Shown here piece after piece: positions 21,473 to 63,775 of a stretch of DNA of 64,000 nt (position 1 is its first letter; each line of letters begins with the position of its first letter). The notes below the pieces were generated by a model. That model was not told where the DNA came from and made no database searches. It saw only the letters and a list, made by a program, of their open reading frames with translations. Source of the DNA: Obrimoposthia wandeli (taxonomy: Eukaryota); NCBI GenBank assembly GCA_977020255.1, contig CDROCS010006454.1, forward strand, positions 1 to 64,000, read 5' to 3'. A program made the position numbers and the translations under genes.

Positions 21473-22447
21473 CTAACTTTTAAGGTTTAAAGTACTTTTC
21501 AGTAAATTAAAATTCTTTCTATTGAATACTTTATCGCCGAGAGCGGTAAGCATTGAACCTATTACCACGCAGGCACCCCCTATATAAGCCAACATATTTA
21601 AATGCTGTGCCTGAAATGACGAAGGCCATAGCTGTTCAGCAACAGAAGCAAAAAATACCGTTAATAAAGGTGTTATCGCTAATGTCGCACTGACTTTAGC
21701 TGTAGGTAGGTACTCCAATGATTTAGCGAAAGTGCCATAGGCTATCAGAGTATTCGCACAGCAAAAAAACAATAACAGTAGAGCCGTATTATCTAAGGTC
21801 GTTATTTTTTCTGGGCTCGCTAATGGTAAAAAGAACAACGTACTGAGTAAATAAATACACCACATAATTTGATTTGAACTGTAATAACGCAACATTTTCT
21901 TTTGGATAATGGCGTAAGCTGCCCATGTAATAGCCGCACCAAAGATAATAATAAATCCTATCAAAAAGTCATGATGGCTAATACTTTTGTCGTTATCGAT
22001 AAATTGTTGGTTGAAAAATAACAGTAAACCTGAGATCAACACAAAAGAGCCCACCATTTGTCCGCGACTAAAGCGCTCTTTAATAAAAATAACACTGCCG
22101 ATTAACATAAAAAACGGCGCCATTTGAATGAGCATTTGTGCTGTCTCTGCCGGTATGTAATGCAGAGACACAAGATACAGCACGTAATTTAGACTCAAAA
22201 ATATAGCAGCAAATAATAATCGCTTCATAATGCCTTTGTGCTGAAGAACAGAGTTAGGTAGATTTTTTTTCGCTGTTAATAACAGCGCAACAAAGAATGC
22301 GGCAAAGACAAAACGGAACCAAGTAATCGTATAAGCGTCCATGAGTACTAAAACGGACTTTAGTGCTAATGGTAGTAAACCCCACATAATTGCAGTGGTC
22401 ATGGCTAGCATTAGCCCTTTTGCGCTTTTGTTGTCCAATTGAGTCAT
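21473..22447 (-). CDS. DMT/EamA-family permease
   Basis: 10 TM; WGLLP, ITWFRF, AQMLIQMAPF, FIKERFS, ITPLLT duplicated EamA pattern. Confidence 0.9.
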   Translation of the reverse strand: MTQLDNKSAKGLMLAMTTAIMWGLLPLALKSVLVLMDAYTITWFRFVFAAFFVALLLTAKKNLPNSVLQHKGIMKRLLFAAIFLSLNYVLYLVSLHYIPAETAQMLIQMAPFFMLIGSVIFIKERFSRGQMVGSFVLISGLLLFFNQQFIDNDKSISHHDFLIGFIIIFGAAITWAAYAIIQKKMLRYYSSNQIMWCIYLLSTLFFLPLASPEKITTLDNTALLLLFFCCANTLIAYGTFAKSLEYLPTAKVSATLAITPLLTVFFASVAEQLWPSSFQAQHLNMLAYIGGACVVIGSMLTALGDKVFNRKNFNLLKSTLNLKS

Positions 22448-25249: not shown

Positions 25250-25753
25250 TATACCCAAACCACTTGAAGATGCAGTTTCAGCGCTAAGCTAGGAAATTAG
25301 ATCAAGGCGCAGCACGAAGACAAGGGTTATTCTCGGTAATTGCTCCTAATCTCTTAATGCCTATCCATGTAGGAACCTTATCAAGTGCTGCACAGCTTTT
25401 TTGCTCCAGGCAAAAGCTAAGTACATACATCCGTGTATGCACAGCTTTTTTGCTCCAGGCAAAAGCTAAGTACATACATCCGTGTATGCACAGCTTTTTT
25501 GTTCCAGACAAAAGCTAAGTACATACATCCGTGTATGCAACGCGGAGCTGGTTTTCTAGCTTAGCTCCCTTCGGGCAAGGCGATAAAGGGTCATCTGTGG
25601 CGTTATTGATTTCGACAATGGAACAACCATTCTCGGCTCTAGCATCCTGCTTCGCTCTACCTTCACCATCCATGGTTTCGTCTTCAATCAATGCCTTGGT
25701 GCTAACCCTTTCTCGACTTGCACAATCCTGTATCTTCAAGTGGCTTGGGTATA
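25250..25753. mobile_element. ERIC-like MITE copy A (504 bp) with an internal 3 x 49-bp tandem array
   Basis: Termini TATACCCAAACCACTTGAAGATGCA ... TGTATCTTCAAGTGGCTTGGGTATA; highly similar to the inverted copy at 34526-35052; no transposase. Confidence 0.9.
25389..25535. repeat. Tandem repeat, 49 bp x 3
   Basis: TGCACAGCTTTTTTGCTCCAGGCAAAAGCTAAGTACATACATCCGTGTA starting at 25389, 25438, 25487 (third unit has 2 substitutions). Confidence 0.95.
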
Positions 25754-34525: not shown

Positions 34526-35052
34526 TATACCCAAGCCACTTGAAGATGCGGGATTGTGCAAGTCGAGAAAGGGTTAGCACCAAGGCATTGATTGAAGACG
34601 ACACCATGGATGGTGAAGGTAGAGCGAAGCAGGATGCCAGAGCCGAGAATGGTTGTTCCATTGTCGAAATCAATAACGACGGAGATGACCCTTTATCGCC
34701 TTGCCCGAAGGGAGCTAAGCTAGAAAACCAGCTCCGCGTTGCATACACGGATGTATGTACTTAGCTTTTGTCTGGAACAAAAAAGCTGTGCATACACGGA
34801 TGTATGTACTTAGCTTTTGTCTGGAACAAAAAAGCTGTATTGTTGTAGCTTTTGTCTGAACAAAAAAGCTGTGCATACTGTCCTTAGCTTTTGCACTGGA
34901 GCTGTGCAGCACTTGATAAGGTTCCTACATGGATGTAGGACATTAGGGTAATGCAGGAGCAATTACCGAGAATAACCCTTGTCTTCGTGCTGCGCCTTGA
35001 TCTGATTTCCTAGCTTAGCGCTGAAACTGCATCTTCAAGTGATTTGGGTATA
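34526..35052. mobile_element. ERIC-like MITE copy B (527 bp), inverted relative to A, with 2 full and 2 degenerate 49-bp units
   Basis: TATACCCAAGCCACTTGAAGATGCG ... TGCATCTTCAAGTGATTTGGGTATA; full units start at 34741 and 34790. Confidence 0.9.
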
Positions 35053-35063
35053 TAACCGCAGAA

Positions 35064-35099
35064 AGTTTTGGCGCTAATGGGTAGGTTAGCGCCAAAACT
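35064..35099. terminator. 14-bp perfect hairpin 3' of the MCP gene (probable terminator)
   Basis: AGTTTTGGCGCTAA...TTAGCGCCAAAACT. Confidence 0.6.
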
Positions 35100-56451: not shown

Positions 56452-56507
56452 TATACCCAAACCACTTGAAGATGCACAATCCTGCACCTTCAAGTGGCTT
56501 GGGTATA
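56452..56507. mobile_element. ERIC-like MITE copy C, 56-bp minimal derivative (two TIRs fused)
   Basis: TATACCCAAACCACTTGAAGATGCA-CAATCC-TGCACCTTCAAGTGGCTTGGGTATA. Confidence 0.9.
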
Positions 56508-56549: not shown

Positions 56550-58724
56550 TTACTTGTTTTGTGCTTTAAATAAAAGTCTGTTCTTATGGAGCAAAGGCTC
56601 TGTATAGCCATTGGGCTGCAAGTGACCTTTAAAGACAAGCTCTAATGCTGTTTGAAAGGCAATGTTATGGTCAAAATTATCTGACATCGCCTGATACTGC
56701 TCATCGTATTGGTTTTGCTGATCAACAATAGTCGCCATTTTTTTCATACTGGTTAACACTTGCTCTGGTGTGCAAATATTATGTTGTAACCAGTTAGCCA
56801 TATGCTGACTTGATATCCGTAGCGTTGCTCTATCTTCCATTAAGCCAACATTGTTTATATCGGGCACCTTTGAGCAACCAACGCCGTGATCAATCCAACG
56901 TACCACGTAACCTAGTATACCTTGTGAATTATTATCGAGTTCATCAGAGATTTCTTGTGCTGACCATTGAGTATTTTCTGCTAATGGTATCGTTAAAATA
57001 TCGTCAACATTTGCCGGCGTACGATTTTTAAGTTGTTGCTGTAACTTTAAAACATTAATTTTATGGTAATGAAGCGCGTGTAAGGTTGCTGCGGTTGGTG
57101 ATGGTACCCATGCGGTGTTTGCGCCGGCCTCAACATGATTGATTTTAGTTGCGAGCATATTGGCCATTTGATCTGGAATTGGCCACATGCCTTTGCCAAT
57201 TTGTGCTCTGCCACTAAAGCCACACGCTAAACCAACATCAACATTGTTGTCTTCATAAGCTCCAATCCATTTTGTTAGCTTTATATCGGCTTTTCTAGCC
57301 ATTACACCAGCTGCCATTGAGGTATGAATTTCATCACCTGTTCGGTCAAGAAAACCGGTATTGATAAATACGACACGTTCTTTAGCTTGGTAAATACAGG
57401 CTTTTAAGTTAACACTGGTACGACGCTCCTCATCCATAATACCCATTTTGATGGTGTTACGTGGCAAAGATAATAAATCTTCAGTGCGATCAAATAATTC
57501 ATTAGCAAAGGCAACTTCTTCTGGGCCATGCATTTTAGGTTTTACAATATAAATTGAGCCAGTGTCACTGTTGCGTAAGCTATTTTTTTGATTAACGTCA
57601 TAGGTTGATATTAATGAGGTAATAACGGCGTCCATAATGCCCTCAGGTATCTCATTGTTCTGATGATCAATAATGGCGTTATTTGTCATTAAGTGACCAA
57701 CATTACGAACAAACATTAAGCTACGTGCTTTGAGTTTAGCTGTTGTGCCGTCAAGCGCTTGATAGCTTTTATCTTGATGCATTAAACGCGTTTGTTGCTG
57801 ACCTGACTTTTCAAAAGTTTCAGACAGTGTACCTTGATTTAAGCCAAGCCAATTTTGATAAACCACCACTTTATCTTGTGCGTCAACGGCGGCAACTGAA
57901 TCTTCGCAGTCCATAATAGTGGTTAGAGCGGACTCCATTGCGATATCACTAACGCCCGCCATATCACTTTGGGCAATTGGATTACTTTGATCAAATTGCA
58001 CGATAAAATGTAAGTCGTTATGTTTAAAAACAAGTTCGATTGGTTTCGCTGCTTCGCCATTAAAACCCATAAATGCTGTTGAGTCGGCCAAGCCCGTACT
58101 GTCGCCATTATTTAGTTTAATCACTAAGGCACTATCTATAACTTGATAGGACTGGGCATCGTGATGCGAGCCATCACTTAACGGGATGGCTTGATCTAAA
58201 AAGTCACGAGAAAACGCGACAACTTTAGCACCGCGAGCAGGATTATAAGATTTTGTTTTTTCAGCGCCGCCTGCGTCAGAAATAACATCAGAGCCATATA
58301 AAGCGTCATATAAGCTGCCCCAACGTGCATTGACGGCATTTAAAGCAAAACGAGCATTCATCACTGGCACAACAAGTTGCGGACCAGCCATTGTGGCTAA
58401 TTCGGCGTCAACATTCTCTGTCGATATAGTGAAATCTGCCACGGGTGCTGCTAGGTAGCCAATGCTTGTTAAAAAACTTTTATAGTCAGTAAAGTTGAAT
58501 TTATCTGCTTGATGCTCTTGATGATAAGTCGTTATCTGCTGCTGAAGCGATGTACGTTTTTCTAATAAAGCTTTATTCTTAGGGCTTAATTCTGCAATAA
58601 GTTTTGAAAAGTCAGCCCAGAATGTTTTAGCTGCTATTGCAGTGCCCGGTAGCACTTTTTCATTAACGAAATTATATAATTCTTCTGCTACCTGCAAATC
58701 TGCGATTGAAATTCTTTTTGTCAT
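56550..58724 (-). CDS. glcB: Malate synthase G
   Basis: AGPQLVVPV, ARWGSLYDALY, IMDCEDS, RNVGHLM, KPKMHGP, MDEERRT, INTGFLDRTGD, MEDRATLRISSQH. Confidence 0.97.
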   Translation of the reverse strand: MTKRISIADLQVAEELYNFVNEKVLPGTAIAAKTFWADFSKLIAELSPKNKALLEKRTSLQQQITTYHQEHQADKFNFTDYKSFLTSIGYLAAPVADFTISTENVDAELATMAGPQLVVPVMNARFALNAVNARWGSLYDALYGSDVISDAGGAEKTKSYNPARGAKVVAFSRDFLDQAIPLSDGSHHDAQSYQVIDSALVIKLNNGDSTGLADSTAFMGFNGEAAKPIELVFKHNDLHFIVQFDQSNPIAQSDMAGVSDIAMESALTTIMDCEDSVAAVDAQDKVVVYQNWLGLNQGTLSETFEKSGQQQTRLMHQDKSYQALDGTTAKLKARSLMFVRNVGHLMTNNAIIDHQNNEIPEGIMDAVITSLISTYDVNQKNSLRNSDTGSIYIVKPKMHGPEEVAFANELFDRTEDLLSLPRNTIKMGIMDEERRTSVNLKACIYQAKERVVFINTGFLDRTGDEIHTSMAAGVMARKADIKLTKWIGAYEDNNVDVGLACGFSGRAQIGKGMWPIPDQMANMLATKINHVEAGANTAWVPSPTAATLHALHYHKINVLKLQQQLKNRTPANVDDILTIPLAENTQWSAQEISDELDNNSQGILGYVVRWIDHGVGCSKVPDINNVGLMEDRATLRISSQHMANWLQHNICTPEQVLTSMKKMATIVDQQNQYDEQYQAMSDNFDHNIAFQTALELVFKGHLQPNGYTEPLLHKNRLLFKAQNK

Positions 58725-59255: not shown

Positions 59256-59437
59256 TAAACGGGGTATTACTAAACAGGAGATGAAAACCACTATATTCAT
59301 GTCTTCGAACTGTTTTTGTACTCAACATAACATTATGCGATATCAATGAAGCCGTTTAGTTATAACTGCATCTTTAAGTGGTTTGGGCATAAATTCATTT
59401 AAGACGTTAACTTGAAAAATGAATGCTCATCATGCCG

Positions 59438-63544: not shown

Positions 63545-63775
63545 TATACCCAAACCACTTGAAGATGGAGTTTCAGAGCTAAGTTAGGAAATCAGGTCAA
63601 GGCGATAAAGGGTCATCTCCATCGTTATTGATTTCGACAATGGAACAACCATTCTCGGCTCTGGCATCCTGCTTCGCTCTACCTTCACCATCCATGGTTT
63701 CGTCTTCAATCAATACCTTGGTGTTAACCCTTTCTCGACTTGCACAATTCTGCATCTTCAAGTGGCTTGGGTATA
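63545..63775. mobile_element. ERIC-like MITE copy D (231 bp), lacking the 273-bp internal module
   Basis: TATACCCAAACCACTTGAAGATG ... TGCATCTTCAAGTGGCTTGGGTATA; aligns to copy A apart from the segment between the two CAAGGCG repeats. Confidence 0.92.

Follow-up and report, generated by a model that had tools for sequence, protein, structure and literature searches.

Twin-hairpin modules with CsrA-type GGA loops, nested in ERIC-like MITEs, resemble independent insertion units

[quoted passage not shown] One of them, copy B (34526–35052), had been described in an initial annotation as a mobile element packed with hairpins resembling binding sites of the global post-transcriptional regulator CsrA. 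The unit that matters is a 48–49-nt two-hairpin module nested in the MITE, not the MITE. The most likely reading, which we hold tentatively, is that the module is a self-propagating nested micro-element and that CsrA binding is a probable by-product in copies transcribed in the sense direction. The module would be non-autonomous, would insert site-specifically into ERIC-like MITEs, probably as folded single-stranded DNA, and would then hitch-hike on amplification of the MITE, with its loop, spacer and end nucleotides kept mainly for its own propagation. Transcription of the GGA strand would give each module two CsrA-type sites, spaced so as to suit a CsrA dimer, and a full copy would expose 6–9 GGAs. 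In those copies that are transcribed in the right sense, CsrA binding is accordingly likely as a by-product, or as a secondary effect that may have been co-opted, and is not a demonstrated purpose of the element.

Copies A, B and C were aligned with 16 relatives. The window copies depart from a 265-bp core by three inserts, which hold nearly all of the looped GGAs. The module types are called T1, T2 and T3, and are arranged in the window copies as follows; scores in bits are those of a covariance model described below.

34526–35052, plus strand: MITE copy B, a 527-bp composite ERIC-like element with termini TATACCCAAGCCACTTGAAGATGC ... GCATCTTCAAGTGATTTGGGTATA and TA at both ends
34599–34646, plus strand: T1 (48 nt), with GGTAGAG as the spacer between the hairpin CACC-ATGGAT-GGTG and the weak hairpin GC-AGGA-TGC; 42 bits
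34740–34837, plus strand: two intact tandem T2 units (49 nt each), with CTTAG as the spacer between the hairpins GCATAC-ACGGAT-GTATGT and AGCTTTTGT-CTGGA-ACAAAAAAGCT; 51.8 bits each
34838–34913, plus strand: decayed T2 units, with the first hairpin gone, a loop CTGAAC that has lost its GGA, and the remnant TGCAC-TGGAGCT-GTGCA; 6 bits
34922–34969, plus strand: T3 (48 nt), with CATTAG as the spacer between the hairpins TCCTAC-ATGGAT-GTAGGA and GGTAATGC-AGGA-GCAATTACC; 67.6 bits
25250–25753, minus strand: MITE copy A, 504 bp, in the orientation opposite to B, with T1 at 25633–25680, three T2 at 25393–25539 and a decayed T3 at 25333–25374
63545–63775, minus strand: MITE copy C, 231 bp, with T1 only (63655–63702)

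T1 is present in A, B and C and absent from all other relatives in the alignment. T2 occurs three times in A, as two intact units plus decayed sequence in B, and once in a Cognaticolwellia metagenome-assembled genome (MAG; locus L074). T3 sits in the loop of the right sub-hairpin of the MITE in B, where it is intact; in A it is decayed. The three types share a common plan, namely a first stem of 4–9 pairs bearing a C-G-closed A-N-GGA-Y loop, an almost invariant TAG spacer, and a second hairpin with a GGA loop, with 23–25 nt from GGA to GGA and a total length of 48–49 nt. The stems are wholly different between T1, T2 and T3. Within a type, stem changes are compensated, as in TCCTAC/GTAGGA versus TTCTAC/GTAGAA, GGTAAT/ATTACC versus GATAAC/GTTATC, and AGCTTTTGT/ACAAAAAAGCT versus AGATTTCG/TGAAATCT. 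A reading of ATGGATGTAGGACATTAG as a mini open reading frame (ORF) was rejected, because the T of its ATG is the freely variable N position.

Exact presence or absence of modules was found at five or more sites. Filled and empty sites place the T1 boundary exactly at TTGAAGA^GAATGG. For T3, one site lies in the right sub-hairpin of B's family (GATAAGG^GAATAACC) and another in the left sub-hairpin on the opposite strand (TTATTAA^GAATGAC; Psychrobium and others). T2 sites are CGCGT^TGCAGCAC (window and L074) and, in a second MITE family, ATGCCT^TGCCTAAA, where the module is present in 10 copies and absent from 3. Contigs from the likely source sample and from metatranscriptomes skip exactly T1, and the T2 plus T3 stretches. 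Target and boundary rules hold across 50 modules: in 29 of 30 cases T1 or T3 is directly followed by GAAT or GAAC, in seven or more host contexts, and T2 is bordered by TGC(A) on both sides. Between MITE families, T3 modules are 83–98% identical, compared with 47–69% for their 120-nt flanks; between B and loci L134 or L152 the module is 98% identical and the flanks are ~55% identical. At 94–98% identity, one and the same T3 module recurs in MITE families with arms of ~50% identity. Since near-identical modules lie in MITEs with unrelated arms and show exact presence or absence, they look like independent units of insertion. The pattern suggests that a 48-nt unit inserts site-specifically, perhaps into the single-stranded loops of hairpins. 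As an alternative to CsrA binding, the initial annotation had suggested that the loops are recognition sites of a mobilising enzyme; the site-specific, insertion-like behaviour of the modules makes this suggestion weightier. No such enzyme was found among the flanking genes.

In several respects the modules resemble REP/REPIN-RAYT and IS200/IS605-derived palindrome elements: both are very small, hairpin-based, non-autonomous repeats that have a hairpin at either end and form tandem arrays, and both insert beside a short fixed sequence with no clear target duplication (here T1 and T3, 5' of GAAT). They differ in that the two hairpins of a module are not inverted copies of each other, modules were seen only in MITEs, T2 has the 3–4-nt repeat TGC(A) at both borders, and a search for transposases among the flanking genes identified no cognate HUH/Y1 enzyme.

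A metagenome scan was run with the T3 pattern, leaving the first loop free and fixing 16 of the 48 positions. It returned 22 true modules and 14 chance matches, and the loci recovered also held further T2-type modules and other ERIC-like MITE host families. A scan of viral contigs gave only three partial, chance-like matches. A covariance model was built from the 22 modules and the window was searched with filters off, which recovered nothing but the nine intact modules of A, B and C (next best match 11.7 bits). The model found 2 modules in 660 kb around ~100 other ERIC-like termini and 56 matches in the remaining loci. Two module matches in locus L151 (46–76 and 1555–1595) are cut by CTGTCTCTTATACACA, an adapter-like sequence; the ends of this contig are probably chimeric sequencing artefacts, and both matches were excluded from the module counts.

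In the 22-module alignment, helix 1 is 90% paired and shows double changes at 4 of its 6 pairs. Its covariation is 0.226, compared with 0.127 for shuffles, 0 of 500 of which reach it, and ≤0.118 for slid partners. For helix 2 the score is lower, since the alignment does not bring T2 and T3 into register. Loop 1 reads A-N-GGA-T in 20 of the 22 matches, with C, T, G or A at N. In one MITE family the two columns for N are the 6th and 10th most diverse of 386, next to GGA columns that are invariant or nearly so. The stems covary, N is free and GGA is mostly kept; some modules have lost it. GGA is missing from both loops in L126 and L148, and loop 2 reads AAGA in L129 and L153. In the window, B's third T2 unit (CTGAAC) and A's T3 (6 bits) have decayed and lost their GGA.

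Recounting reproduced the GGA bias reported for the window copies. Copy B carries 13 GGA versus 5 TCC on the plus strand and copy A 12 versus 4 on the minus strand; copy C has 3 of each. The named hairpins of copy B were also all located, at the correct coordinates: CACC-ATGGAT-GGTG at 34602–34615, GC-AGGA-TGC at 34629–34637, TCCTAC-ATGGAT-GTAGGA at 34923–34940, GGTAATGC-AGGA-GCAATTACC ending at 34967, and CATAC-ACGGAT-GTATG twice, offset by 49 nt. The bare count was dropped as evidence. It is weak because it is marginal against dinucleotide-preserving shuffles (P ~0.02 for the GGA count, P ~0.1 for strand asymmetry), because the strand asymmetry of TGT, TTG, TGA, GAT and GAA equals or exceeds that of GGA, and because tandem duplication supplies four of the GGAs.

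The looped GGA pattern is not chance. The 1.26 kb of MITE copies contain 9 occurrences of the motif CA-N-GGA-N-G, and so do the remaining 125 kb (both strands); its density is ~100-fold higher in the copies, and each full copy presents it in four C-G-closed hexaloop hairpins. The GGA bias stems from the nested modules and not from the ~265-bp MITE core: the intact modules of copy B hold 9 GGA versus 1 TCC within 194 nt, the rest of copy B holds 4 GGA and 3 TCC, and module-free relatives hold 2–5 versus 2–3. The view that the MITE itself carries the motif therefore had to be given up; the carriers are the 48–49-nt modules, absent from most of the MITE family.

The global minimum-energy fold puts just 2–3 GGAs in hairpin loops. 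Because most of its structure consists of long-range and inter-unit pairings, this fold was rejected as a test of looping; ensemble and local folds took its place, controlled by E. coli CsrB. By these, 6–9 of the 12–13 GGAs are mostly unpaired (probability >0.5), and local folds place 8 GGAs in hairpin loops. The mean unpaired probability in the ensemble is 0.51–0.66 at GGAs versus 0.30–0.32 over the whole RNA, and GGAs of the opposite strand are mostly paired (unpaired probability 0.13–0.17). Outside any MITE, upstream of the rimM-trmD-rplS region, a further hairpin with a 9-bp stem, AGTACTAAA-ACGGAC-TTTAGTGCT, lies at 22344–22367; it has no second GGA hairpin and no covariance model match.

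These observations also bear on the reading of the initial annotation, in which the GGA hairpins are kept for CsrA binding on RNA, MITE transcripts titrate CsrA or control adjacent mRNAs, and transposition spreads Csr modules. We consider this rather unlikely, while regarding CsrA binding by the modules as plausible. The loops match the CsrA/RsmE optimum, as had been claimed: they present CA-N-GGA-N-G in a C-G-closed hexaloop and agree with RUACARGGAUGU at 10–11 of its 12 positions. Four such hexaloops per full copy, two GGA loops 23–25 nt apart in each module, a free N beside a conserved GGA, and GGAs preferentially unpaired on this strand only all argue for a role of CsrA. In the literature a Csr system is described for Colwellia, and CsrA for the host family; motif searches found no csrA in the 64-kb window. 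The conserved TAG spacer and module ends are unexplained by CsrA, and the existence of decayed modules also speaks against this reading.

The only and top Rfam match was TwoAYGGAY (RF01731, clan CL00106), below its gathering threshold of 43 bits: B scored 30 bits (E 0.013), over the tandem T2 stretch 34740–34837, and A scored 20 bits. Rfam gave no matches at the gathering threshold, and for single modules in six further loci TwoAYGGAY gave none, even with E values of up to 1 allowed. Membership in TwoAYGGAY was rejected, as the sub-threshold score rests on the tandem T2 array mimicking the basal stem of the model. The two have in common many copies and two adjacent GGA-loop hairpins, of which the first is AYGGAY (here AYGGAU; ANGGAU in relatives). 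They differ in the second loop, which is CUGGAA or GCAGGAGC here and not AYGGAY, and in the unit, which is 48–49 nt without a basal stem of its own; the host MITE arms would supply one, and in the predicted fold the arms of the right sub-hairpin enclose T3. The modules are, moreover, always nested in ERIC-like MITEs and occur in Alteromonadales rather than Pseudomonas or Clostridia.

TwoAYGGAY has been proposed as a CsrA binder and Csr/Rsm decoy (PMC4333381), and its standing as the top match, in a Csr/Rsm clan, favours CsrA here. A preprint of September 2026 (10.64898/2026.09.22.753630) reports up to 202 copies per Pseudomonas genome, adjoining REP arrays, and describes a possible multivalent Csr/Rsm sponge with mobile-element-like spread and variable extra AYGGAY hairpins. 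The initial annotation knew of no description of its idea. A mobile sponge had in fact already been suggested in the TwoAYGGAY work (10.64898/2026.09.22.753630), which is the nearest precedent; our literature search found no paper describing CsrA-type sites borne by MITEs.

Features of CsrA-sequestering small RNAs (sRNAs) were taken from PMC1488887. The elements share with CsrB/RsmZ-type sRNAs multiple loop-exposed GGAs on one strand, and the 6–9 per full copy are comparable to RsmY or RsmZ, against 19 in E. coli CsrB. They differ in having mostly YGGA rather than A(R)GGA, and in being a dispersed repeat in both orientations, not a gene. Copy B holds 4 A(R)GGA and 13 GGA in 527 nt, compared with 20 and 22 in the 369 nt of E. 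coli CsrB; this amounts to 2.4 versus 6.0 GGA per 100 nt, or 40%. Rfam gave no match to CsrB, CsrC, RsmX, RsmY or RsmZ. The GacA/UvrY box TGTAAG-N6-CTTACA, allowing up to 2 mismatches, is absent from the window, and promoter-like sites in the element occur at chance level only. The element has no terminator of its own; the only good one lies outside B, and A and C have none at the equivalent place.

35064–35099, unstranded: strong 15-pair hairpin between the chemotaxis receptor gene and copy B, the terminator of that gene, terminator-like on both strands

Since this hairpin is terminator-like on the plus strand as well, a plus-strand transcript through B would probably end there. The low GGA density, the few A(R)GGA motifs and the lack of a GacA box, own promoter and own terminator tell against a titrating transcript of the CsrB/C kind, as the initial annotation had envisaged.

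The flanking genes are also unfavourable to CsrA control of neighbouring mRNAs. Copy A is flanked by rplS and acs, copy B by the chemotaxis receptor gene and a gene for ribonucleotide reductase, and in both the GGA strand is antisense to either neighbour. Copy C alone lies in sense, downstream of an ORF on the minus strand that continues past the end of the window, with isocitrate lyase on the plus strand on its other side. Among 29 module-bearing elements, the upstream gene has the same orientation in 12 and the opposite in 14, and the downstream gene the same in 8 and the opposite in 14. Orientation relative to flanking ORFs, tried as a sign of function, thus shows no bias, and regulation of adjacent mRNAs is unsupported as a rule. 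Acetate and glyoxylate-shunt genes adjoin three of the four window copies, namely acs (A), isocitrate lyase (C) and malate synthase G (mini-element D, described below); with n = 4 copies, this adjacency may be chance.

In contigs of the likely source sample, summed depth over the MITE is 40–400x that of the flanks, which suggests many copies and favours titration. Contigs identical to B across T1 (34551–34674, 0 differences) were found in three metatranscriptome libraries; such module-bearing pieces count in favour of the CsrA reading. They were set aside as evidence of RNA, because they are unstranded and come from a repeat this abundant, so that DNA carry-over would look alike.

A bolder reading would make the module a mobile micro-element that inserts in the single-stranded loops of ERIC-like MITEs and is carried by them through the genome, each copy delivering a CsrA-dimer site (GGA hairpins ~24 nt apart), so that transposition would tune Csr titration and regulon wiring and T2 arrays would act as a dosage dial. 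We regard this as distinctly unlikely.

Several points weigh against self-propagation of the module with CsrA binding as a by-product. The motif is the CsrA/RsmE optimum, is paired at a suitable spacing, and is common to TwoAYGGAY across phyla that all have CsrA; such a likeness would be a striking coincidence if CsrA had no part in its conservation. Neither a mobilising enzyme nor an autonomous relative emerged, transposases having been looked for only among the flanking genes, and every module seen lies inside a MITE. Recombination or conversion between the two quasi-symmetric arms of the MITE could explain some cases. The T3 pattern, by fixing 16 of the 48 positions, inflates module identity, but the free T3 positions still agree far better than the flanks. 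In one MITE family, the conservation of T2 does not exceed that of the remaining element, and T3 is only mildly more conserved (5 of 32 versus 97 of 290 variable columns, P 0.045). Stem mismatches, tried as a means of strand assignment, gave no decision (12 G-T versus 9 A-C) and so do not reveal the folding strand.

An RNA-level role with a partner other than CsrA, as a processing, stability or termination signal of read-through transcripts or as a site for another loop-binding protein, is improbable. Roles in processing, stability and termination have been described for ERIC and Correia elements. The stable, conserved hairpins, one T2 hairpin that scored terminator-like, and the conserved TAG spacer, which suggests more than two GGA contacts, are in line with such a role, and ERIC is co-transcribed with an orientation-dependent effect on mRNA stability (PMC3184786). 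The modules, in contrast, show no orientation bias, their loop motif is the CsrA optimum without an RNase E or terminator signature, and no T-tract follows the hairpins.

The least probable reading invokes no selection, with neutral palindromic decorations arising by duplication, slippage and template-switch correction of quasi-palindromes, similarity reflecting recent descent and CsrA likeness reflecting chance: the marginal raw GGA count inflated by tandem duplication, the T2 conservation no higher than the MITE background in one family, the decayed copies and the motif coincidences expected when many repeat families are screened would fit it, but it is hard to square with three module types of unrelated stems that share the same loops, TAG spacer and GGA spacing, with compensatory changes between genera, with modules of 94–98% identity in MITEs with arms of ~50% identity, with a hypervariable N beside an invariant GGA, and with insertions of exactly 48–49 nt at five or more sites.

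The MITE that hosts the modules is multi-copy, intergenic and non-coding; only spurious ORFs overlap its four window copies. Copy C is an internal deletion between two CGCCTTG direct repeats, by which the centre, T2 and T3 were removed. The fourth copy consists of terminal repeats only.

56452–56507, plus strand: mini-element D, 56 bp, two terminal repeats head to head, no modules

D lies just downstream of the malate synthase G gene (56550–58724, minus strand). A lone terminal repeat without a partner at 59372–59391 (TATGCCCAAACCACTTAAAG, 2 mismatches) is probably a MITE remnant.

The terminal repeat TATACCCAAGCCACTTGAAGATGC was found in >120 stretches of other genomes, including Enterovibrio, Vibrio, Aliivibrio, Shewanella, Psychromonas, Colwellia, Cognaticolwellia, Psychrobium and Rheinheimera. 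Over half of the first 120 stretches come from two Enterovibrio MAGs, where the family is therefore massively expanded, with no module in those copies. Colwellia, Cognaticolwellia, Psychromonas, Shewanella and vibrios are the groups in which the chassis is common. Paired termini most often span 264–269 bp. All 46 paired elements start TA-TACCC and end GGGTA-TA, and no empty site of the MITE itself that could prove a TA target duplication was recovered. Candidates for an autonomous transposon between paired termini in Enterovibrio loci were rejected; the intervening ORFs are ordinary genes between separate MITEs. Similarity to the interior of B is confined to Colwellia, Cognaticolwellia and Alteromonadaceae loci and, together with a G+C content of 38.9%, suggests a host in Colwelliaceae.

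The chassis is named ERIC-like because its termini and TA ends resemble ERIC and its interior does not. E. coli ERIC/RU-1 has the termini tatacccgtcatatttcaagctgcag ... ttgggtata (PMC2759123, Table 1a). With ERIC/IRU/RU-1 of enterobacteria and vibrios the MITE shares termini of the form TATACCC...ACTT.AAG.TGCAG and ...GGGTATA, TA at both ends, an intergenic location, an imperfectly palindromic and non-coding sequence, many copies, and size variants through internal insertions and deletions. It differs in its core of ~265 bp versus 127 bp, an interior without likeness to the ERIC central core or RU-1 sequence, marine Alteromonadales as hosts, and the nested twin-hairpin modules. On this comparison it would belong at most to an ERIC superfamily, and not to ERIC proper. 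A second ERIC-like MITE family with the termini TATACCCGTTACCAATCAAAATGC (L131, L132, L138 and others, metagenome Ga0209185) has T3 and T2 modules separated by 30 nt. The columns that vary most in this family, with three alleles, are concentrated in predicted hairpin loops, which suggests mutational hot spots at loop positions.

Should CsrA bind the modules in vivo, they would provide a concrete case of nested mobile DNA spreading the sites of a global post-transcriptional regulator, and the long-orphan TwoAYGGAY class would gain a tractable relative with clear insertion boundaries. Even without a role for CsrA, a two-hairpin unit of 48 nt with site-specific insertion into MITEs would count as one of the smallest mobile units described, and would raise the question of which enzyme moves it.

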